Source of the DNA: Bispira polyomma
Lineage: Eukaryota
Direction: 5' to 3'
DNA length: 64,000 nt
Assembly (NCBI GenBank): GCA_965649765.1
Contig: OZ287748.1
Coordinates: 43,524,001 to 43,588,000, forward strand
A model generated the notes under the pieces. That model searched no databases. It had not been told where the DNA came from and saw nothing but the letters and a program-made list of their open reading frames with translations. Positions 12,109 to 64,000 of this stretch are shown piece by piece. How positions within the stretch are numbered: the first letter of the stretch is position 1; each line of letters begins with the position of its first letter. The translations under genes and the position numbers were made by a program.

Positions 12109-12299
12109 TTAATTAAGTTAAGTAGGGTACCAGACCATTTAACAGGTAAAAAGTTAAGTAAGTAAACATCCCTCCCTGTTGTTAAGGAAAGTTGTTTACA
12201 AGCATGCTGATTGGTTAAGTCAATAAACAAGTAATTTAAGTGAAAATATATGGTCAGTTTGAATTTAGTCACTGACAGAGTGACATTGAAAAACAATTT
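12109..12299 (+). repeat. Element 1 repeat A1 (about 45 bp missing at the 5' end)
   Basis: 191 bp, near-identical to 17798-17988. Confidence 0.9.
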
Positions 12300-17752: not shown

Positions 17753-17988
17753 TCGGGTACGGTGTCTAGGCACGGAACATGTCAGTCCTGCACAACCTTA
17801 ATTAAGTTAAGTAGGGTACCAGACCATTTAACAGGTAAAAGGTTAAGTAAGTAAACATCCCTCCCTGTTGTTAAGGAAAGTTGTTTACAAGCATGCTGAT
17901 TGGTTAAGTCAATAAACAAGCAATTTAAGTGAAAACATATGGTCAGTTTGAATTTAGTCACTGACAGAGTGACATTGAAAAACAATTT
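17753..17988 (+). repeat. Element 1 repeat A2
   Basis: 17798-17988 matches A1; followed by cccacccaccctttt. Confidence 0.88.
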
Positions 17989-38900: not shown

Positions 38901-41900
38901 TTATATGCTGCACGCTAGAATGATCTATCGCAAGATATTAGGTGTTGTCATTTTCTTTTAACCTTCATAAGCAAGCTCAAGACCTGTCCCTATCAAAAAG
39001 CTTATCCCTCCTGACATGGTTTTACCATCAGCGGTTCACTCTCCGGTAACCTCCCAAAGTATTTTCCCATGACATTTCTTGTTATAAACAGTTTGTAATA
39101 ACAATAACAAAAACATTTAAAAATTTCTTGTAGAGTTTCAGACTTCAAAAATATTTTTGATTTTTTTAAAGAATTTTTCTTTCGAACATTTTGTTATGTG
39201 TCCATTTAAATGAATGAAACCAGTCCCTAAGGTAGTGTCAAGTTCAAAGGTGATATTGGCCAAGGTCAAGTTGATATTATTTGATATTATTTATTGGTAG
39301 GATGGTATGAAGTGTAACACAGGTAATGAAAAGATTCCGTTTGAGGTTTTATTATTCACATATTAGTTTCTCTATATGAACATTTAACAGTTAGATAGTT
39401 ATTAAAGATGCTTAAAATTATAAAAATTGTATAAATATTAAAGCCACATAAGGCACGCTTGACAATAACAAATAGCTCAATCCAAGCTATACAAATCAGT
39501 AATACACAAATAGATACATAATGCCTCTAACACAAATATAAAATAATACTCCATAATAATAGGACTAGCCATAACATATGTAAACGTAACTTCGCGTAGA
39601 ACTGAGGCTACACACATGGCTATTATTGCTCGTCCATTTCACTTTGTATTCTAGACCAATTACAAGAATCACACTTGGGTACGCTTACTCCTATACAAGG
39701 CATACACTCCAACATGTTATACAGATGTACCCTTATTAGGTGGCCATAAGCCAGCCATAAACAGTCATACTAATTCTAAAAAGTCATGTCATTGTCATTA
39801 TTTAAACTTTGCCTGGTGCAAGGAGCCCGAGACCCGGGCCACCTAATCGCCTAGCAGAGAGTCCTGCCTTTTGGAGCTCCTATTTAACCCTGGCCCCCTA
39901 GACATGTAGCTCAAGGGGGTTAGGAGACAGGATCCACACGGGCTATAGGCTCTGGCTACCAAGGCAATTTTTAACATTCTGTAATTCAACATGTCATAAG
40001 TCATGTATTAAGACGTGATGGTCATGCCTCTCTGCCATCCGTAATCCCTATAGGATTCGGAGAGAGGCTGCTAGTTCATTACTAAATTTGTCACAAGTCT
40101 TTGTATCTGATAACTTTTAAATACTGGAAAACTTTATAATAGCTTAGGTAAAGGGGAGGGGGTGGGAAAAATAAAATGTACTTGTTGTTGCTTCAAGTTT
40201 CAATATGGAAGCTTAAATTAGCGGGAACATAATTAAGTAGCTTATGCTGTGATTGGTTGAATTGTTGATTGACAGGAGGTCAGCATAAAAGAAGTCTAGT
40301 CAAAATAAATGTTTTAAGGTTGTACAGAAGTATTAACCTGTGGACTGAGGTAGCAGTGCCCTAAAGGTGTTCTGCTTACCAAACCAACAGAAATCTTATC
40401 ATTGCTGAGAAAGAGTTTGCCTGTTGTTTTTTCCAAAATTGTACTCGAATGCATATCTCTATATCATTTTTGCTTGTGAGTGATAATTATTGGCCAAAAC
40501 TTCAAGAATGTTTACATTATGCTCATATATGCATTTCATATGTATTATATACTCTTTCAGCTTGTTTGTTTCATATGTCCTTATCCATTTTCTTTCAGAG
40601 TCAGAGCTACTTCGGATGTGTTCAGCATTTACTGTTTTTTCCACTTTAATTAACTTATATCATCCCAATTCAGATGTCCATTTCTTCAAAAACAGGCAAC
40701 GAGAATGTGAATGTCTTGTGATTCCTAGCATGCTTAAAGTTAAAGTCAAATTGGAAAAACTGTTATTGGCAAATGTTAATACCACCAACATTATATACGA
40801 CCACATAGTATATGAAACACTACGATTTGCTGGCTATTTTAAGCGAAATCTAACTAAATGGGAGAAGGAATATAGCAACATAACAACGACTGTAGCCACC
40901 AATGAAGTAGTATTTTATGAAAATTTTCCTAATGTGTCGATAACCTTCACAAAGATAGGATTTTCATCAAATGGATTATTTCATATTACTTTGGAAGGTA
41001 ATACCCTAGATGTTTTGTATCTGTGATAATTGCAGTGCTTGTAACAATAAATATTCTAATATCACGTTTTATTTGATATTTTTTTTTTTTTCTTTTAAAG
41101 CAAATCCATCTTGCTAAAGCTTCTTTTAAATATATTAGCCTGCAAAATTGTTTAAAATTGCAACTTAACAAGCTTATTAGAAATTGCTGCTTCAGTAATA
41201 TGAATACATTTCTGAGGTATTTGCTCTTTGAAAAGGAAAAAATATATATAACATAAATCAACCTAATATATTTATAATTGTAGATGTAATCCTTCTTACT
41301 TCCTTATGTCAGTCCTGTGGTACTTTTTACATGTAGGTGTAATGTTTACAATTTCAATGGAATTTCGATTACAATAACTAGTCAGTATTATGTGTTTATA
41401 TTTAACCAGGTGATGATTTTCTACACCTTACTTGCTACAATATATCAACACGTAAACAAGACTACACCACTGACAGCAGTGAGTCACCCACACACACAAA
41501 TGCAACATTAATTGGCTTAACCACCACGTCAGTGTCTAATACAGAAACTACACAAACTAGTTTTAAACCACCAACATCTACAGAATCAGTATCACTCTCT
41601 ACCCAGAAATTGCCACACTTAACCTCATCAAAAGGCACATTAGGATATTCAACTGAAGTTTCTTTAAAGATGGATTCCTCTGTGAACCAGGATTATGGAT
41701 TGACATCACCAAAAAGTGCCATGTCAGATTCACGTGAAAACAACCAATCCTCCAAGACATGGACAGGTATGTAACATAACATAAATAGGTAATTAATTAA
41801 TTCACAGATAAACAAGTGTGTTATCTTGACACTGTACTCCAATCATGTTGACTCCATCACTGATATTTCAGTGTTCGATACAGAGAATAGAGAAAGTAGT

Positions 41901-43595
41901 CTCACGGCATCACTGTCAGAAGTACTTGTATCATTAGTTTAGTTCAATCAATCGATATATTTAACATCATTAGAAGGTACACCAGTGATACCACATCCAT
42001 GAATGTATTTTAGTTCCATCAATCGATATATTTAACATCATTAGAAGGTACACCAGTGATACCACATCCATGAATGTATTTTATTGCAAAATTATTTAAT
42101 TTAACTTGTGTTTTTACAGGTATGTTTAGTTCAATACATAAATATGATATATTCAACATTATTGGAAAGTAAAAAAGGTCATTTAAGTGATACTACATCT
42201 GTGAATGTATTTTTTGTTTAAAAAATTATTAATTTGACTTGTGTTTCCACATTCTTATAATTGAATACACTTTATATATTGAAGGTTGGAAACCTTTCTG
42301 TTACATTTTACATAATAAACATGTGTCAAACATGATTAAATTATAAAACCCTGAAGTTTCAATGCTTATGTTACAAATAGATAGTTTTGGTAGATGACAA
42401 TCTTACATATTTTTTAATATTTCAGAAAGAACCTTTAAACCTGCCTTATGACAATAAGTAAAACTGTTGTAGGGTCTTTTTAGAACAGCATCTTTAAGAG
42501 TTCTCTGAACCAGGCCTTTCTGAGTACTGTTATTTCTTTATCTTATGATGAAATTCCGTATAAGGGTTAGTGCATTATCGCAGGCTAGAGGTTCGGAATT
42601 TAGTCATTCACAGATTGTCCTACAAAATATAGACTAATATGATTGTGATTTATCCAATTTTGTTACTTAAATAAGCGTTAGTGCATTAAATCAGATATTC
42701 AAAACTAAGAGTCTTTCTCTTGGAGAGTTATTTCAACAATAATGTAATATGCAATAATGTTTAGGTGTTATAGCTGGTGTTGTATCCTGTGTGATACTGT
42801 TGCTGATATGTTTTGTAACTGGGGCAGCCTGGTGGTACAAAAGGTATGTCTCTTATAACTCATTCATCAAAAGAGAGAGGACCAGGGCCCGTATTCTTGA
42901 ATGTATACTCAGCTTAAACTCATACTCAACTCAAATACAGGACATGTGGAAATCATTGTACATGGAAATAACCTCTACTTGTGACCATTCGTTTTAATAG
43001 AGATTTTAACACTGAATTCAAATATGAAGTCAGATTTTAGATATTTTTGCTGTATCCAGAATTGTAGTGAATCCAGATTTGAGTTGAGTATACGTTTGAG
43101 AATACCAGCCCTGTTATTTATTAAAGCCATCAAGGAAAATATTCATTATTTCAATGTGTAACGTGTTAGTTCTTAGAACAAAAGTTACTTTATTTTTACT
43201 CTTAATAGAAAATTGGGCCGTTTTAGATTTTATGGTATTTTTTCTTAGGAATTGGTTATTATAATATTTTGTCTTTCAGGCATCAGAAAAAGAATAGCCC
43301 ACAAAAACATACATATGAAAACACATCTGCTCCAAGCATAGAGGAGACCAGTCTTGATACAACTGGATTTGCAGATATAACATCAACATACATTGACAGA
43401 CCAAATAAGAGTGAGGATGTTTGTATACACTATGGCGAGGAAGCAGAAATAAACACAAATGAGAATGTTCTAGAAAATAGTGCTGCAGAATCAGTTGTAA
43501 GAGAAACTGAAGGTCACTATGCTCCTCTGACAACATATGAAAATATACCTAGAAATACACAAGATAACATGTTAACCAATGAGTATCAAATGTGA
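35902..43595 (+). CDS. Receptor paralogue copy 3, intact 499-aa type I membrane protein: signal peptide, SUEL-lectin-like domain, Cys-containing domain 2, S/T stalk, TM, Tyr-motif tail
   Basis: Exons 35902-35959, 36669-36959, 40599-40997, 41410-41766, 42765-42843 and 43280-43595. All introns are GT-AG, phases 1,1,1,1,2, giving 1500 nt with no internal stop. Splice sites are conserved in the paralogues. TM: VIAGVVSCVILLLICFVTGAAWWYKR. Confidence 0.82.
37910..39010 (+). mobile_element. Degenerate L2/CR1-like LINE RT fragment in intron 2 of copy 3
   Basis: Motifs DLCAAFDTIDH, LAWFNSYL, FYAEDTQLY, LKLNPDKTEF and FKTATLVFK. Related to 51780-52860. Confidence 0.85.
39700..40380 (-). repeat. Second copy of the structured-core repeat
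   Basis: The reverse complement aligns with 23020-23500. Confidence 0.7.
41935..42085. repeat. ~71-bp tandem duplication in the stalk-TM intron of copy 3
   Basis: tcaatcgatatatttaacatcattagaaggtacaccagtgataccacatccatgaatgtatttta occurs twice. Confidence 0.85.
42886..43110. mobile_element. MITE with GGCCCGTATTC TIR and CWG target site (PIF/Harbinger-like)
   Basis: TIRs ggcccgtattc / gaataccagcc, flanked by cag and ctg. The empty site is visible in copy 2 (gaggaccag|ttgttc, ~20105). Confidence 0.8.
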
Positions 43596-44180: not shown

Positions 44181-46146
44181 ATTATGTACTAACATGTATA
44201 GTGTTTGGTATAGAGATGTAGATAAAGTAATACAAATATAAATGATATTATGGTGTTCTCTCTAGATTGGGGGGATTAGGGGGGGCGGGGGGGGGGGGTG
44301 TTGCTGTAACCACTTTTGATCAGTTCACAAATCAGAATGACTTGGCGATGACCCTGTAAAACCCACCTTTTCCCCTTTTTAGGACTTGTCACTTGGCTGT
44401 ATACTTCAGTAAACATGGAGGCTTCATATATTTTTCAACACAAAAAAACATGTGTGTGGTGTTTGTTAATTATTCCTGGTGTAGTTGTTATGGGTTTTTT
44501 CTATTGGAAAACTAAAATGACCAATGTTAATTTATACTGGTGGGCTGACACCGAGGTGTCAGCCCCCTCAGTTCTGGTACCAGGCTACTGGGGGCCAATT
44601 AGGCCACCTGGGGTCACGAGGGCACATATATAAGGGTTTGGCGCCAACCAGCGCCATCATTAAAACTTCAACTGGTCAAAGTGACAGTGCTTTTACAATT
44701 GGGCGTTTACTACCCTTTTTAATATTTTAAAGCTTTTAAATTCTGTCATGGCTCCAAAACGAGAATACCAGTGTAATGCATGTATGGGGAGACATGAACG
44801 CCCTGTGGGCAAAAAATGACGATTTATTGATGCCAGCGTCGCCGAGGATGTACCTACGGTTGAATCCAGTGCTGGTCAGTCGGATTCGGTGTCTGAGCTA
44901 ATTTTACAACAATTGCAGTCTCTCAATAGTAAAATGGACAGCATGGATCAATGCGTTAAGATGACGGAGGCGGCGCTGTGCACACCCAGCGCCAATAAGG
45001 CTAGTATCTTACCTACTACCAGTGCTAATGTAGTTTCCAATGTTGTTACCCCAAGTATAATTGAACCAGTGGTGGAGGCAGTAGTTCCGTCTCTAGATTT
45101 TCTGCGGTCAAACGAAAATTTACAAAACCAGGTAGACCAATGGCTACTCCAGCTCCAGCAGCTCAATCAACTGACTGGAGCAGGTAAACTTAAGTCCCAA
45201 CGTGGGGGTACAGATGCTCCAATCAAGAAGGCAGTCGATTGGCCTCAAAATTTTGTGCTCTCGGGGGCTAAGAAGGTTAGACCCACCTACAACGACTTAA
45301 CCTTGGTTCAGTTTACTTTGGGATTCATAAGGTGTGTGCAAGAACAAAAATTCCCGGAAATTAAAGAAGCCATGTTGGAATATTGTGCCAATCTTATGGA
45401 TGACGCACACGACTTTTCGTGGGAAGCTGCTAAAGATTCCCATGCCATCCTTTTAACCAACACGGAATTGGACCGCCTTAAGTGGACCGATGTGGACAAG
45501 GTCGATCGAATCCGTCGGGCACATGCCCAACGTCATATATCGGGCAGTTCCAGTAGTGGTACGGGTACCAAATCCATTGGTAGTAAAACAAAGTTGCCAA
45601 GCAAGAGTCAGGGCGTGATATGTAGATTTTTTCAGGAGGGGACCTGTAAGTTCAATGCTACTCATAGAACCTCCGGTCAACTCTTCAAACATTGTTGTGA
45701 AACTTGTGATGGCAGCCATCAAACAAAATTGTGTCCAAAAAAGTAAAAAAACTAAGGGCCCACTGCAGAAATGCAGTGGGGAAACCAGTATTTAGCCATT
45801 ATGTATTAACATGTATAGTGTACTGTATAGAGATGTAGATAAAGTAATACAAACATAAATGACATTATGGTGTTCTCTCTGACTTGGGAGGATTAGGGGG
45901 TGGTGGGGCTGTGACCACTTTTAATCAGTACACAAATCATAATGATTTGGCAGATGACCCTATAAAACCCACCTTTTCCCCTTTTTAGGACTTGTCACAA
46001 GGCTGAATACTTCAGTAAACATGGAGGCTTCATATATCTTTCAACACACAAAAACATGTCTGTGGTGTTTGTATATTTACTCCTGGTGTAGTTTTTATGG
46101 TTTTGTTTTACATTGGAAAACTAAAATGACCAATGTTAAATTATAC
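44181..46146 (+). repeat. ~350-bp direct repeats (44181-44537 and 45798-46146) flanking the gag fragment
   Basis: The two copies align throughout with scattered mismatches and include the host intergenic motif atacttcagtaaacatg. Confidence 0.85.
44536..45790 (+). mobile_element. Ngaro-like element 3: 5' end plus gag only (pol and YR missing)
   Basis: Starts ACTG-N29-CAGT. gag 44748-45755 (MAPKREYQCNACMGRHERPVGKK*, KLKSQRGG, DRIRRAHAQR, CRFFQEGTC) has two premature stops and ends in a slippery site plus hairpin. Confidence 0.85.
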
Positions 46147-54730: not shown

Positions 54731-57700
54731 ATGGAGAAATTGTTTATCTATTTGTATTATATGTGGCTCTTGTTGGAATCACTGCAAGGTTAGTAATAAT
54801 CCATACAAATGTGGGTTTTTTTATCAAATACAGTATATCTCCCCAAACAATCACTAAAACACTGAAACAATTTGGACCAATTTGCCTGAACTTCCATCAA
54901 CAATGACCTATGTTTACAATGTTGTGACTAAAATTATTGTCACCTGCCACTTAAACAAATATCTCTGGAAGGAGGAGTGTGGTGACTGATTAAGTATGTA
55001 AAAAGTATGTAAAACTCAGTTTTAACTGCTGACATCTAGGCTATATAGATATGCTAACAAACAAATTTTAAAACAATGTTAGATGTTCCTAACACAATAG
55101 TGATTTGGGTAACGAACAACTGTTCTTTGGTCACCAGACCATTTGCTGGACATCGGTTCTCGTATAAATTACATGGTTCTGCACCAGAAACCATTTTGGT
55201 GATAAATAAACATGGGGTCTCTAAGAGCAGAACAGAATATTATTGCAGGGATAAATTCAAAGAAATAGTAGATTTTGCTAACAAGTACGTAATATAATTT
55301 AAGTACATGAGTATTTCTAAAATGTAATTGAAAATGAGAAATTTTAATAATCAATTAATAATCAATTAAACAAAACTTTCAACACTTTAAGTTGTTCTAG
55401 TCTGTAACTATATCACATCTGCAGTGTTTAATATAACTGCTGTACTGCTTATTTATGCAGATACAATAATCTTAATATTAAAAACATCTACAGAGTGAAT
55501 CGATTGCCAAAATGTTTCTGTATTTGTTTAATAAAAACTATTTAGAAAAGTTGCTTCTCAATAACACTACATCAGGATCTAGTTAGGATTCAGGGTATCC
55601 AGTTGTAAACGAGTAATGTTAGGATCAATGGTATCATTGAATTTTAGGTCTACAAAGTAACTGTTGTCAAATTAACCATATTAAGATACCACAGGATTCT
55701 TAGGACATTGACAGCAATAAGGTGTAAACTTAACTCTTTGATTTGTCAAATAAAAATACACAAAACTTGTTCAGATCAAATATAATTATATAATTAGCTG
55801 ATAGGTAACAAATGTATTTACCTTAATGTTATATAACATACATATATTTATAAAACTTGTTTTATGGCAAAAGTGGCAGTACATATTACATTTATATGTA
55901 TGAAATTTATAGCATGTGATGAATCTGACTGTCAATTTGCAACAACATACACTGAGGGCGGAGGATGGACAAATAAAGTCATGACATGTTCTCCTGCATT
56001 ATATGTAATAGAGATTGAAACAATAAGGGAAAGTTGTCCCTCTTTCTATCGCTATGTTACCTCTGATCAACTAAATAGTGTTAAAAGGTTGTGTAATACA
56101 CATAACAGTTGTGTTTTTTCTGATGATGGCACTACCCAAGCATTAAGAAGTAGTTGTCAGAATAATACCCAGACAATTGCAATATGGTATGCATGTAAGC
56201 AAGGTGAGCAGCAACATCTTTTTTTGTTTTACTTCTTTTTGTAGATTAAAGTTGGGCAGCAGGACTATATTCTTGGAACATGAAAAAAGTTAAAGTACTT
56301 CATTAAAATGCCACATATATTGCTGTGATGTTTTTGATAGATTAAGTATTGGCAGGAATATTGTGCATTCGAAACAAGAATTTATTTTGATACTTTAATA
56401 ATGCTACAAATACTGCAGCATTTATAGTCACAATGGCTGAAATGCAAACCATGTCTGAAATCATTATTGACTAATATCAACTACACCAAATTAACATGAA
56501 CATTTTTTTCTATTTTCTTAAATCAAGAAACACTTTTTATTTATTTGCTGTTATCTATTAAGTAAACATATGGCTGACGTCACTGCCACAAAGTTTTAGA
56601 TAACGGACGAGAATGGGACGAAATTTCATTGATTTTCGAAGTTGGTGAAGTTTTTATGAACATGTCTTCGAGGAGGTTCAATGAGAGATGTATATATGTA
56701 TATATATATTATATAGTCGTTATATACTGATATATGGTCCATTTGGAATCTTTATTTAAGAGATAATATGCAAAGACATTAATATTTGAAAAGTAAAAAC
56801 CATATAAAACATTTAAAAGTATGATCCTTTAAAAACACATAGTATAAAAAGGCATTAACATAAAACCATCTAAACATATGAACAAAAATCTAAATATTGG
56901 GTTTACTCTAACTTAAAACATGTGATGTTTTAAATCGATTTAACTTATTCCCTAAATATCTTAATATGGGTTAGTAAAAAGCAGATAAGCAATGTTTTAT
57001 TAATGAAACAATAAACAAAAATGCATCTTAAATATATTCCTTTCCAATAATTAGTCAATAAATAATTAAGAGACTATCTTAAGATAGGCCTGACTTAGGA
57101 TAGAAAAATCGGTAAATCTTTCGAGTGTAGTGTATTTGCAAATTCGGAAGACGGATTCGGAAGACAAAACGGAGTGTTATTTTTGCCCCTTAAAACGTAT
57201 ATTTTGAGCCACCACTAAATGATGTAATATTTTACTGTGATGTTTCAAAACCCTCATATACAATTAATGTTGTGGTGAGCGATATTACTCAGACAAGAAA
57301 CCTCCTTTGATGAAAATTTTTATTTTAACAGCTTATTCAACCCGCAAACATAAATAGAACGGTGTTCAGAAAATATTACCCACTCTAAACATGTTCAGTG
57401 TGCCATTAAGACCCTCATAATATGACACAAGACTTGTGAATGTGACGTTAAAACCCAAAAGTAAACTAACTGTGCCCTTACTGTGTTAAAATGCAAACTA
57501 AACATTTAAAGCTTTATTTCAAGCTTAACTAAGTCATTCCTGATAAGTTTGATGCATTTCTTCGTCATACAACTTGAGGCCGCAGTGGCGGAGTGGTTAG
57601 CAAGCATTGCGCTTCACAATCACTGGTCTCTCACCTCTGGGCGGCGTGAGTTCGAATCTCGTCGATGCCTATGTGAGAAAGGTGGTAGTTCCTTACTGTG

Positions 57701-60700
57701 GGCTGCTGGTTTCTCTGCAGAATCTTGACCAACTAAATATATAACCTACTAAAAAAGTGGACGTTAAATATCCAAATTCAAATTCAGATTCGTCATCCAA
57801 CTTCATATCTCATTGACTTAATTTCATGTAGTTATTTAAGTCTGCATAGGGTTTTACATGTCTTTGCAGGGACTTTATGACACTGAAATAAGAAGTGACC
57901 ATGTTCTCTAAACTTATTGACTCTCAAGATATCCAGAAAAATTTCAAAACAAATTAAATTGAAAACTATTAAAATGTCCAGCATCTGAAAAATTCAGTGA
58001 GATATAAATAAGTAATCACAGGCAATTTGTAGGTTTAATCAGAGTTTACAGGTAATCATCTGAATTTTTAATTGTGGTAGCCATTTGAGAAATCCTAAGC
58101 CACTGTCCTTATATAATACTGTCCTTAGCAAGGGTTTCCAAAGTTTCGTACCCAGGTCTTACTTACTGCATGAACTGTTGTATCTGTCTGTTTTCCTGAC
58201 ACATATGCTTCGAAGCCCAAAAAGCACCGCCCTATATTATTCAAAATTGTCTGTTAATAATATCATGCAAATAACGGTTTACTTTTAACAAGCATTTGTA
58301 TACAAATCAAAGCCTTCCATGTGCCACCCTAGTTTTTCACAGAGTACCTTGTTAAATAATTCAGGTTGTAGATTCTTATTCTTTTAGAGATAGAACAACA
58401 TGTAAAGTGGTATTGACATATGTTATTGACAGAGACAAACAAGGACTTGTTATTATAGATTCACTACCTCTAATGGTTACAATAATACAAGATTGTGGAA
58501 CACATTAACCGAATAATAAAAGTTGGTTTGGTTTCAAAAAAGCACAGCACATTACAGGGCCTTTAACTGACCTTGGTTTAGACAAATAACTGCCATAAAA
58601 CTAAATTTCTATGTGCGTAAGATACATTTACCATTAAACATAAGTTTGCACAAATTTTAGTTACATAATGCTATCCTATAAAACAATATCCTCTTATGCT
58701 CCAGGTCCCAGAGGACAGTGATAAGTTGTGATGCATGAATTTTATTATTATAGAATATAGAAACTTCATACATATAAAATGTTACATTGTACATAAATCA
58801 TGAAATATACAAAAAATAAAATTGCTTACCTACATAACAGTAGCCTCTCTGGAAGGACTAATCTACTATATCTTTACACACAGGATTGGCTAGATATAAA
58901 CCTAAAATAAAGCCCAAACCCTTCAAATGTTTGTTTGGGTTATGAGAAAGACCTCAGGCTGAATGATTAAAGACATGCTAAAATATATCAATTAATGTGA
59001 TACTCATAACAGGCCCTACTTGTGGACATTGTCAGCCAAAAGGCGACATGACATAAGACATACTAAAATATATAAACTTTACAAAACCAATACAGTGCCT
59101 ACATTTTTAAAATATAAAATAAAATACACATTTTGTATGAGAAGCAATACAGTACACATATGGGGCTATTCCTAGTTATAGTATCCTATGTGGGTTTAAA
59201 TATAAGCATGAACTCTAACTGGGTTACCATAACATTAAATCTGTGTTTGATTTAACTGGGACAAGTATTAAGCAGTTTGATACAAATAGTTTTAAGTACT
59301 ATGCTGTGCTTTAAGTCCAACCTATTTATTCCAATTTTTTTTCTATTGTAATACTACTGTGGACTGTGTCATATTAACATATTAACATACTATAACAGTA
59401 ATAACATATACTAGATACTTTGGACTGCTTCTCCAAGTTTAAAGCAAGTATAGTATATTAAAAGCAGTTAATAATAAATAAATAATAATAGTTATATAGC
59501 GCCCTATCCATTCATACAAATGCTCTAAAGTGCTTTACAATATAACATTGAATAAAAATAATTATATAATACAGTACAATAAAAATACATAATGTTTGAT
59601 ACAACAGTATAGAATTTAACGACCCTGCTTACAGCTAGGGGTTTCACTAAGAAAATAAGCTAAAATTTGTTTTTCCAAGGCTATTTTACATTTTAATATA
59701 TTTCATAAGCTGTTTTAAAAAGATATGTTTTAAGTTAAGACTTGAAGGACCCTACAATTATTTGACATTTTCTGGCGAATCATTCCATAATGCAGCTGCA
59801 GATTTGTTGAAACATCTGTTGCCATAGGTTGCAGTGTGTTTTTGGTACGACCAGAAGATTTTTTTGTTTGGGATCGTAGGGATCGGGATGGTTGATATCT
59901 TTGGACAAGATCAGTAAGGTATGCAGGAGCCAGTCCTTTTAGTGCCTTGTATGTGTAGCGTAAGATCTTGTACCCTGGCCTGTACTTTACTGGAAGCCAA
60001 TGCAAGGTGTAGAGTACTGGTGTAATGTGATCCCGTGTGTGTATACGTGTTACAAGGCGAGCAGCACAATTCTGTATCAGTTGAACACGCCCGGTATGTG
60101 GCTTGGGAATACCATGGATTAATGCATTCCTATAATCCAGACAAGAGATCACCAATACTTGCATCAGTGTTTTACAGGCATCTTCTGTAATATATTGGCG
60201 GATTTGGCCAATATTTTGAATCTGGTAGTAGCATGACTTTGATATGAAATTCACCTGTTTTTCCATTGTTAGGTAAAAAAAAAATAGTCACTTTAATTTA
60301 ATTTAAATTTATTTACTGTACTTCACTGCATATTTTCCTATACATGGTGTAATTGAAGATAAATGGATTCATCTTCAACAATAAAACCAGCTCTAATTTT
60401 GCCTTAATTTATTTTACTGTATAAACATAGCACTCTAGTTTTGGGTGCTTCTCTAACCTGACTGTACTGAAGCGGTTTAGCAGTTGCTATCTTGGCCAAT
60501 AGGTCGTCATTGGAGTCCTGATTACTCAAGCCATCAGTAATTAGTCATATTAAAGTTTTGTTGACTTGTGATTTCAATGCTGTAGATCATACAAATAACA
60601 ATGCAGTGTGTCTGCAATATCAGATCCTCGTGTAATGCTGGCAATGTTGAAGTTACTTAATATCAGTCCATCTGTCAGGATATCAGGTCATCTGTAGAAA

Positions 60701-63700
60701 TGGTGCTTAGTTAGTTTTATGGTGTTATGTAAATGTAGTTATAGTGACCCAGTAAGTTGTTAAAAGTTAAATACAATAGAGTCTTTTGTAAGAGAGACAA
60801 GGTGTATTGTGTCAAAAATGACTGAACAGTCATGTGTATTTACAACATTTGTACTTTTCTTACAGAAATGTCTACATATATGTATATATACATATAAATA
60901 CAACACTTGTACTTTTCTGACAGATATGTCCACATATATGTATAAACTGAATACTTAGCATTTAGTATAGAAATATATTAAGAGTATGTAGATGACCTAT
61001 GATTTACAGTAAAATGTATGAAGTTAACTAAAATTATCCAGTAGTTCAAAAAAAAACAAAAAAACAATCTCACTGTCTGTTGCCAATTAAATTAAGTGCT
61101 ACAGGGAAATTATAGCTGGGTCAGTAAATAAGTAGATCCTCTATATGAATGTTGACACAAGTACATGCTAATATTTCATAATTACTGCAGATCCCATTCA
61201 CCATGTATATTCTATGCTAAGTTAGAAATAATATTCCTTATTATCCGGACAAAGGGTAAAAATAAGTATTTAAACAACATAAAGAAATTCACTCATATTA
61301 AATGTCTATCACTTGTGATGTTTGGTGATTTCTTATACATTTTTTACTATTTATAGTAAATTGTAGCCAAGTGTGGTAAATTCACATCTGCTATTATCCA
61401 GTAGTAGGCCAAAAGGGGTGTTGATAAAGGTTGATAAAGCTGTTCTTATTCATATTCTTTATCTAGATTCTAAAGCTGATGTTGAATCAATGGAGTTCAT
61501 AGCTAAACTACCAAAATGACCTAGATAATTGCTAATTTAAAGGCCCTACTCTGATTTACCCTGGTTTCCTGTCTAAATATGACCCACATTTTCATTGGCT
61601 GACCTTACTCCGACATGTGTTGGATCTATTCTCAGTTATGTGCAATCAAAACCCAAAATATTATAACATAGCTTTCTGTAGAAAATCAAATAAATTATGC
61701 TGATGCCTCATTCATTTCCTTACAAGCCCAGTAGTATGCACTAGTGTACTGCCAGTTTCTTATTTGAGGCACCCGACTAAAAGTAGCAAACACTGCTTCA
61801 CACCAGATATTATTACCTCTTAAAGTATTTTTCTACGACCTATCTCTCTGGACATGTTATTGTTTATAAAACATAAACCTAAAACAAAATGCAAACAGAA
61901 TTTTCCACAATTTTGGAATATAAACATTTATTTTTGTATGCAATCAGCATCTCCCTTCTTCTTACTGCGAGAAATATATGTGTTTGGAGTTCTGAATTCG
62001 TGTGGGATACAGCACATGTCATGTTAGGTGTAGTTGAACATGGCACCAGATTACACTTTTATCTATCATATGTCCATATATATATATATATACTATATAT
62101 TACTCACTCTTTCAGCATATGTGTTCTAAATGTTTTTATTCTTTTTTTTCAGAGTCATCAATACTGAGGATGTGCTCAGGATTCAGTTATTTTTCTGCAT
62201 CACTTAACCTATATAATCCAAATTTACAACATGTACATTTCTACAAAGACAGACAACGTGAATGTGAATGTATTGTAATTCCTGGCATGGGAGGACTGAC
62301 AATATTAGCAGAACGACTTGTTTTAGCGCATGCCACCGCCAGTACCTATGACCATGACACACAGGAGACATTAGGATTTATTGGCTATTTTAGGCCAAAT
62401 ATAACAGAATGGGAAAAGAAATATAATGCACCGACTAAGATGACAGTTGTCAATGAAGAAGTAGTGAGAGAACAAATGGTCAATGTCTCCATAACCTTCA
62501 CGAAATTGGGATATTCTTCAAATGGTTCATTTCATCTTTTTTTGACAAGTAATAATCTTTGTACTTTGCGTGATAATTGTCACTAGTGTATATTTATATA
62601 GTTGATTACTAGTATTATTGGATTGTTGTTTTGTGTCTTAACATACGTATGCCACATTTTAGTGTGTATGTCAGTGCTGGGATACTCCTTACATCATATC
62701 AGTGTAATAATACCATTTCTCACTACGATTCATACTAGAATTAATAGAAAGTGCTATGTTTTATGTATTACCAGGTGAACACCCTTTAAACCTTACTTGC
62801 TACAATATACCAACAAATGAACAACAATACACCACCATTGACAACAGTGAAACAACCCGATTAGTAACCGACAATGTTGAAGACAACACTCAAACTAGTG
62901 AGTCATTCACACACACAAATACAATTTTATTTGACAATACTGTGTCAGTATCTGATAGAGAAACTACACAAACTAGTTTTAAACCACTAATATCTACAGG
63001 ATTGGTATCACTCTCTACCCAAAACTCGACACATTCAACCTTGTCAAAAGGCACATTAGGATTTTCAACAGAAGTTTCTTCAAAGATGGATTCCACTGTG
63101 AACCATGATTATAGATTTACCTCACCAAAAAGTGTGTTACATTCACCTGAAAATAACCAATCCCCTAACACATGGACAGGTATGTAACATAACATAATAC
63201 AGATAATTAATTCACAGATAAAGTCATTACGTAAACTTATTAAGAGCTAGATGTGATCTAGGTCTGCATAAACTCAGGCTTTTAAATACTATATACTAAC
63301 ATTTTATGTCAATGCATATTTAATTCCATGCAGTACTTTTATTTTTTGAATTTGTTTTGGGTTTCAGATATTATTGCAGGGGTCACTGTGGCTCTCATCA
63401 TTGTTTGTCTGATTATCACTCTGGTGATAATTTGCATCTGTAAAAGGTAAACTCGACATATTATAATGCACTACATTTTGGAGTCTATCAAGGTTGATGG
63501 CATATAAGTATATAGTTTACATATATAGTTTATAAAACATATTATACACACAAATTTACAATATTCATCCGATCAGTATATGTATCGTAAATATTGTATT
63601 ATATGTATGATGATTCATTCACAATTAAAAATATTTTATTAAACCTTATAATAAAATATTTTCTATTAATTGTCACTGACTGGAAAGTAATTTCTATTGG

Positions 63701-64000
63701 TAAAATATATTGTATTTATTTTATTGTTAAAGGAAGAAAAAGCGCCATAAACATAACAAACCAGAGACTGTTGAAATGATAAATGGACAAAATGCAGATA
63801 TTAATCACTTGCATCATTTTTTAAGTGAAGCCACAGCAAATGAAGATTTTGTGTCTGTACAGGTTCTTAACCACAAACCACATGCTCCTGTTACATCAGT
63901 ATCATCACAATCATTACAAACAAAACAGAATAGGAACATACAGCACTCAGATTGTGAAGAAACTGGAAACCATGGTTTCATTGAATTCGTAGAAGTAATC
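54731..64000 (+). CDS. Receptor paralogue copy 4 (3' end outside window): same ectodomain architecture, divergent TM and cytoplasmic exons
   Basis: Exons 54731-54788, 55913-56203, 62153-62548, 62775-63179, 63368-63446 and 63733->64000. GT-AG introns with the same phases as copy 3; frame open. TM IIAGVTVALIIVCLIITLVIICICKR, then KKKRHKHNKPET... Confidence 0.8.
57576..57788 (+). mobile_element. tRNA-derived SINE in intron 2 of copy 4
   Basis: A box tggcggagtgg, B box gttcgaatc and a (caaatt)n tail. 15-bp TSD ttcgtcat(a/c)caactt at 57561-57575 and 57789-57803. Absent from the equivalent intron of copy 3 (~37770). Confidence 0.9.
59468..60270 (-). mobile_element. L2-like LINE 3' end (ORF2 C-terminus, 3' UTR, (TAT)n tail)
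   Basis: Motifs ISCLDY, IQNCAARLV, LHWLPV and LAPAYL; 3' end gcgctatataactattattatt. Confidence 0.88.

Follow-up and report, generated by a model that had tools for sequence, protein, structure and literature searches.

The 64,000-nt stretch of Bispira polyomma DNA analysed here (the window; G000:C1:43524001-43588000) holds four plus-strand copies of a gene that contains introns and encodes a single-pass membrane protein. They are part of a tandem array of about 20 receptor genes extending over approximately 700 kb (G000:C1, 43.43-44.14 Mb) of an AT-rich animal genome of 1.04 Gb. In each gene, a Cys-rich exon resembling lectins is followed by exA, which is all-beta, by a mucin-like stalk exon, by a transmembrane (TM) exon of 79 nt and by one tail exon. 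The genes come in a short-tailed, copy-3-like type (A) and a long-tailed type (B). We find that ectodomain and stalk are joined to two unrelated TM/tail modules at a sharp boundary inside the stalk-TM intron, and that this boundary, located at approximately 63222 in copy 4, is common to all A and B genes read and not specific to copy 4; it is the family-wide boundary, not copy 4, that is of interest here. Copy 4 is probably a mosaic member of the B subfamily with a broken tail frame, likely inactivated recently, in a family whose A and B tail modules are old and whose ectodomain and stalk have probably been exchanged between them. Besides the window, we read the 20 kb that follow it and, elsewhere on this contig, another 17 stretches; protein searches were run exon by exon, without a joined spliced model. 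Copies 1-5 are designated c1-c5, and the B paralogues downstream of copy 4 are designated B1-B4.

The original prediction regarded copy 4 as a module swap, in which an ectodomain shared with copy 3 had been placed on a different TM segment and tail. The alignment on which it was built is reproduced: in blastn, positions 62883-63222 of copy 4 match 41464-41812 of copy 3 with 82.8% identity, no similarity is found beyond, and the shared sequence ends in ...ttcacagata(aa) at 63220-63222, approximately 42 nt into the stalk-TM intron. Alignments of nine and of fifteen genes revealed that the 3′ end of the stalk exon and these first ~42 intron bases (gtatgtaacataac...aattcacagata; the intron head, 63180-63222, plus strand, in copy 4) are common to every A and B gene read, and therefore the good match of copy 4 to copy 3 reflects conservation across the family and no special tie. 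Over the last ~200 nt of the stalk together with the intron head, the identity of copy 4 to the other genes is 84-89%, whether these are of type A or B. Past this point all A genes carry one sequence and all B genes another, and the two classes are unalignable; the rest of the intron in copy 4 (63223-63367, plus strand) is B-specific, being 82-88% identical to B1-B3 and aligning with no A gene. Moreover, the collinearity of copy 4 with B1, B2 and B3 starts at 62668, includes the stalk, the TM exon and the two introns, and extends beyond the tail, at 76-85% identity. Hence, the swap stands as a description of the family, in which a shared ectodomain and stalk sit on two unrelated TM/tail modules with a sharp intronic edge, but the event is not copy 4's own.

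As originally described, the TM exon of copy 4 (63368-63446, plus strand) has the same size (79 nt) and phases as that of copy 3 (42765-42843, plus strand) and keeps the xIAGV...KR ends; the two exons encode IIAGVTVALIIVCLIITLVIICICK(R) and VIAGVVSCVILLLICFVTGAAWWYK(R), respectively. The membrane span of copy 4 is uncharged and its exon is 84-92% identical to the TM exons of B1-B4, and neither K, R, D nor E was found inside the TM span of A or B. The A tail (43280-43595, plus strand, in copy 3) comprises approximately 105-118 residues with two YEN motifs and HYAPLTTYENI, and full-length copies also contain YENI-x12-YQML, the spacer of which exceeds the 6-8 residues of a canonical immunoreceptor tyrosine-based activation motif (ITAM). 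Within the A tails, TTYENI resembles an immunoreceptor tyrosine-based switch motif (ITSM), and an inhibitory motif (ITIM), VEYDDV, is additionally present in g876 only. The B tail is approximately 408 residues long, with 19 Tyr from residue 99 onwards; in B1, B2 and B4 it is encoded by one open frame of about 408-410 codons. A pattern search of the B tail detected YESM and YEGI but no ITIM ([SIVL]xYxx[ILV]), ITSM, ITAM or NPxY. The two tails are unrelated to each other (hhalign probability 0.05%), and Pfam returned nothing significant for either tail, for exA or for the stalk.

A genome-wide DNA search with 63230-64000 identified four further loci, 75-450 kb downstream, that share this intron, the TM exon and the tail, and a protein search with the tail returned exactly five loci genome-wide, namely copy 4 and B1-B4. 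The A tail is found at 15 loci, all within 43.43-44.14 Mb of the one contig, with the B loci interleaved among them. The search of 1.84 billion representative proteins yielded two real relatives of the B tail in other organisms, with 55% and 32% identity; P0003, which the same search also returned, was rejected as a spurious ARM-repeat match. The blocks YDEAL (twice), PYFLYD, DYAxSYxKTKG, YSYADxRG..GITxHIxGEGY, EY(E/Q)xI.F and NEVY are kept down to the relative with 32% identity. The locus of the closer relative (L032) shows the same order of parts: an exon like exA, then a Ser/Thr stalk exon, then a TM exon of 79 nt that ends in TGTAAAAG before the donor gt, and a single tail exon. The B module is old. 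As the TM exon is of equal size in A, B and the foreign gene, it seems that both types descend from one gene and that neither captured a foreign module. A word search for relatives of the A tail was blank, a result that is weak given the length window of that search.

The apparent lack of Tyr in the tail of copy 4 requires a different interpretation from that given originally. The single tail exon of copy 4 starts at 63733 (plus strand) and is clipped by the window end at 64000; its 89 in-window codons (63734-64000) indeed contain no Tyr. Since the first of the 19 Tyr of intact B tails is residue 99, this Tyr-free start is a common feature of B tails, the remainder of which lay outside the window. 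The exon extends 932 nt further, with homologous coding sequence reaching G000:C1:43588932, and in a MAFFT alignment it is 86-89% identical to B1-B3 and 82% identical to B4. The inspection of the downstream sequence, which the original prediction had proposed, thus recovered the rest of the B-type tail exon; no A-type, copy-3-like TM or tail exon was found between copy 4 and its downstream neighbour, the A-type copy 5. The proposal that a Tyr-less tail makes copy 4 a decoy or an activating partner is therefore left without support, as it rested on the window edge, and the Tyr-less end that the assembled copy 4 does have arises from a decay-like frameshift.

Relative to B1-B4, copy 4 lacks one base at 63984/63985 (plus strand), a site that is not in a homopolymer, and a further, in-frame deletion of 27 nt follows downstream. 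The frame stops 17 codons past the 1-nt deletion, after VISPVLMKLLVIH, at window-equivalent 64034-64036. The assembled tail accordingly has 101 residues, no Tyr and thus none of the 19 of the B tail, and copy 4 has, in place of a single open frame of ~408 codons, a split of 100 + 315 codons, the 315 homologous codons after the shift being still open but out of frame. Arithmetic from pairwise values gives a branch omega (ratio of nonsynonymous to synonymous change) of ~0.75 for copy 4 vs 0.42 for B1. Copy 4 is most likely a recently inactivated gene, i.e., a young pseudogene, as judged from its sequence. An alternative acceptor (tag/A) at ~63986, which would join the TM exon to the Tyr-rich frame, was considered and rejected: B1, B2 and B4 have the entire tail in a single frame (409, 410 and 408 codons, respectively), and copy 4 is simply one base short.

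Signs of decay are frequent across the array. Stops interrupt exA and the tail in B3 and the stalk in B4, and g735 and g782 contain stops as well. In copy 1, the TM exon ends after 54 nt (window ~2004), where a deletion of ~380 bp fuses it to the tail intron, so that the donor and the last part of the membrane span are missing. In copy 2, exA is broken (~11810) and ATATGT replaces the GT donor after the TM exon (20066). The same copy harbours direct repeats of 191 nt, 98.4% identical, at 12109-12299 and 17798-17988, which lie between exA and the remnant of the stalk exon, flank ~5.5 kb and look like the long terminal repeats of a retroelement inserted in the gene.

Exon-by-exon phylogenies, which the original prediction had proposed to compare, are incongruent, but the place at which copy 4 changes its relatives is not the predicted one. 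The exA tree consists of two clades supported at 100/100, one uniting copy 4 (exA at 62153-62548, plus strand; 131 codons, all-beta; beta lineage) with the A-tailed c1, c2, g701, g735 and g782, the other uniting B1-B4 with the A-tailed c3, c5 and others. For exA, the approximately unbiased (AU) test rejects monophyly of the B genes (p 2e-57) and a clade of c4, B2 and B3 (p 5e-31), and copy 4 is 76-81% identical in nucleotides to the A-tailed beta genes. In the 5′ part of the Ser/Thr-rich stalk exon (62775-63179, plus strand; 405 nt, its end being 63179, not 63180), copy 4 groups with B2/B3 (support 95/95, 90% identity and a shared 3-nt insertion), and keeping it with its exA partners, a group named post hoc, is rejected (p 0.016). 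From TM exon to tail, the topology is (B4,((c4,B1),(B2,B3))). The ends of blastn high-scoring pairs and sliding-window identity place the switch of copy 4 from beta-lineage A-tailed relatives to B2/B3 at about 62571-62667, in the exA-stalk intron and not in the stalk-TM intron. Copy 4 thus appears to be a mosaic, with an exA of a lineage that is otherwise A-tailed, a stalk closest to B2/B3 and a TM/tail part closest to B1. The junctions lie inside error-free short-read contigs covering window positions 63083-63459 (L001 1354-1730) and 61730-62893 (L001 1-1164), with three runs from two samples, and therefore the joins are not assembly artefacts.

Synonymous divergence (dS) along the gene provides a further contrast. 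Between copy 4 and B2 it is 0.67 in exA, 0.15 in the stalk and 0.18 in the tail. Between the A-type c3 and B2, stalk dS is 0.19, and A vs B genes in general give 0.19-0.20, no deeper than among B genes themselves. The stalk evolves near-neutrally (omega ~0.8-1.0), and therefore selection does not account for the low A-B stalk dS. Because this divergence is as low as that among B genes, the data point to homogenisation of the ectodomain, or recombination, across A and B genes, and the original suggestion of intronic recombination or ectodomain gene conversion is supported at the level of the family. The anatomy of the genes, the boundary, the incongruent trees and the frameshift are direct observations; with regard to mechanism, we postulate that gene conversion or unequal crossing-over would swap ectodomain and stalk across the two gene types. 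Such exchange would be limited to the extent of homology, with the homology edge in the intron acting as a fixed stop, and the boundary would be sharp and family-wide because exchange reaches only as far as homology does. Signalling, in turn, would proceed through phosphotyrosine docking.

How do other explanations compare? According to the original prediction, a recent recombination in the stalk-TM intron of copy 4 put an A-type, copy-3-like ectodomain on a foreign TM segment and tail and so created a Tyr-less decoy or activating partner. Apart from the end of the copy 3 similarity at ~63222, this is favoured by the stretch 63050-63222, in which the identity of copy 4 to c3, c5 and g928 (89-92%) slightly exceeds that to B1-B3 (75-87%), and which has the A consensus at 6/6 semi-diagnostic sites. 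However, each of these six sites is also found in one of B1-B3, and a small A-to-copy-4 conversion tract at 63005-63222, which we considered separately, is unsupported on the same grounds. Moreover, B1-B4 have the same boundary, the 5′ part of the stalk forms one clade with its 90% identical counterparts in B2/B3, B tails are Tyr-rich, no A-type TM or tail exon lies between copies 4 and 5, and the exA and stalk trees exclude B1-B4 as recent copies of copy 4; we thus consider a recent swap in copy 4 highly improbable. It is only slightly less improbable that no exchange took place at all, and that purifying selection alone kept ectodomain and stalk similar in A and B as two old subfamilies of paralogues. 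The equal size, phases and ends (xIAGV...KR) of the A, B and foreign B-type TM exons suggest common descent of whole genes and would suit this explanation. Yet the stalk is near neutral while A-B dS is only ~0.2, the ~42 intronic bases are conserved like an exon before similarity drops to nil, the exA tree conflicts with tail type, and the synonymous and intronic divergence of A and B ectodomains is not as deep as that of their tails.

A more serious, though still unlikely, possibility is that the stalk was homogenised but copy 4 obtained its exA by differential retention of tandem exA exons in an ancestral B gene, not by exchange. Partial copies of the 5′ half of exA are found ~290 nt upstream of the main exA in copy 5 (L010:6889-6999, window-equivalent 80889-80999), B2, B3, g476 and g760, and those of c5 and B2 are nearer to the exA of copy 4 than to that of their own gene (63% and 78% in amino acids); in addition, the upstream intron of copy 4 aligns with the region before the exA fragment of B2. 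On the other side, the 5′ part of copy 4's exA is 85-90% identical to the A-tailed g735 and g701, and it is only ~73% identical to the fragment of B2, less than the ~85% expected from a c4-B2 dS of 0.15-0.18. The partial copies may also be read in either way, as scars of unequal crossing-over or as tandem-exon remnants. The least probable explanation, to which we assign next to no weight, is that an error in the assembly produced the mosaic or the frameshift. The array is repetitive, and the only contig of run X1 over the deletion site comes from the paralogue B1, with X3 leaving the site uncovered; however, the error-free contigs from two samples span 61730-62893 and 63083-63459, one contig of run X2 covers the deletion site and agrees with the assembly, and the missing base is not in a homopolymer.

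An exchange of ectodomain and stalk between old A and B modules, with copy 4 as a decaying mosaic, therefore remains our preferred interpretation, and several points weigh against it. The groups for the AU tests were named only after the trees had been seen, and some of the incongruence of exA could stem from duplicated exons that were differentially retained. Just one short-read contig, which may derive from the very individual that was assembled, supports the deletion site, and the lesion would have to be recent, or else an allele or an error, as 315 codons remain open behind it. Finally, a first exon with a signal peptide was searched for upstream of copy 4 and was not identified. We further speculate about a working combinatorial system, in which a fixed edge of homology in one intron would allow variable outer domains to move between short ITAM-like A tails and long multi-tyrosine B tails, and frameshifted members like copy 4 would be expressed as tail-less decoys, but regard it as improbable.

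Upstream of exA, a Cys-rich lectin-like exon at 55913-56203 (plus strand) is probably part of copy 4 and shows conservation with its counterparts in copies 3 and 5, B1 and B4. It weakly resembles SUEL / rhamnose-binding lectin domains, the match to SUEL_Lectin (PF02140) being below threshold (16.2 bits with E 0.013, and 15.4 bits, vs a Pfam gathering cut-off of 31.4). An ATG-led hydrophobic open reading frame (ORF) upstream of the lectin-like exon of B1 (L011:4665-4715) is a possible signal-peptide exon; copy 4 has ATC at the corresponding place (window 55405-55450), and only these two genes align there. The fold model of exA is all-beta but of low confidence (pLDDT, a per-residue confidence score, of 61.6), and its best matches include the CUB domains of MASP, PCPE and Neto, which for this model are non-significant and below threshold (template modelling score 0.48-0.54, Foldseek E ~0.02).

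Other features of the array were noted in passing. Reading past the stalk donor produces GGT ATG TAA in all copies (window 63177-63185 in copy 4), with an in-frame stop two codons into the intron, and therefore intron retention would yield a soluble ectodomain in every family member. The stalk exon of copy 5 is split by ~500 bp that are not in other genes (L010:8166-8660, window-equivalent 82166-82660). In g782, the A-type TM exon is present in two tandem copies, 138 nt apart (L024:2569-2643, 2707-2781), and the closely related A-type genes g476, g760 and g876 have TAT where others have the TM-exon acceptor TAG (L020:3535-3544, L023:2795-2804, L027:4564-4573). A gag-like ORF of 285 residues lies between copies 3 and 4 (window 44889-45746, plus strand), and an ORF resembling the tail of a reverse transcriptase lies inside the lectin-exA intron of copy 4 (window 59730-60266, minus strand); such transposon insertions widen the gene spacing.

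Characteristic of vertebrate immune recognition are receptor arrays in which a constant outer domain is combined with an alternating inner signalling part. With regard to these, the original prediction likened copy 4 to paired activating and inhibitory receptors, and similar ectodomains with different cytoplasmic parts are indeed present here (stalk 84-89% identical in nucleotides across A and B). The classical form of such pairs does not apply, since the B tail lacks ITIM and ITAM and neither TM segment is charged. In vertebrate paired receptors, gene conversion homogenises extracellular exons across genes with different tails (Siglec-11/16, PMC5701461; CEACAMs, PMC2832619, PMC5112662). The array resembles the Siglec-11/16 and CEACAM families in its clustered genes with near-identical outer parts and unrelated cytoplasmic parts, in an exchange that stops before the TM exon, and in pseudogenes that are frequent and participate. 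Unlike these families, it has a non-immunoglobulin (non-Ig) ectodomain, a B tail without ITIM, no short-tailed partner with a charged TM residue, and two tails that both bear Tyr.

The new elements here are the exact intronic boundary shared by the family and the contrast in dS along the gene, together with the switch point and the frameshift of copy 4. They also correct the view from which the analysis started: the event is not copy 4, which is probably in decay, and the boundary is old and common to the whole family. Taken together, our findings suggest that the same evolutionary logic as in vertebrate receptor families, i.e., an exchange of ectodomains that halts at one intronic boundary, operates in an undescribed invertebrate family built of non-Ig modules.

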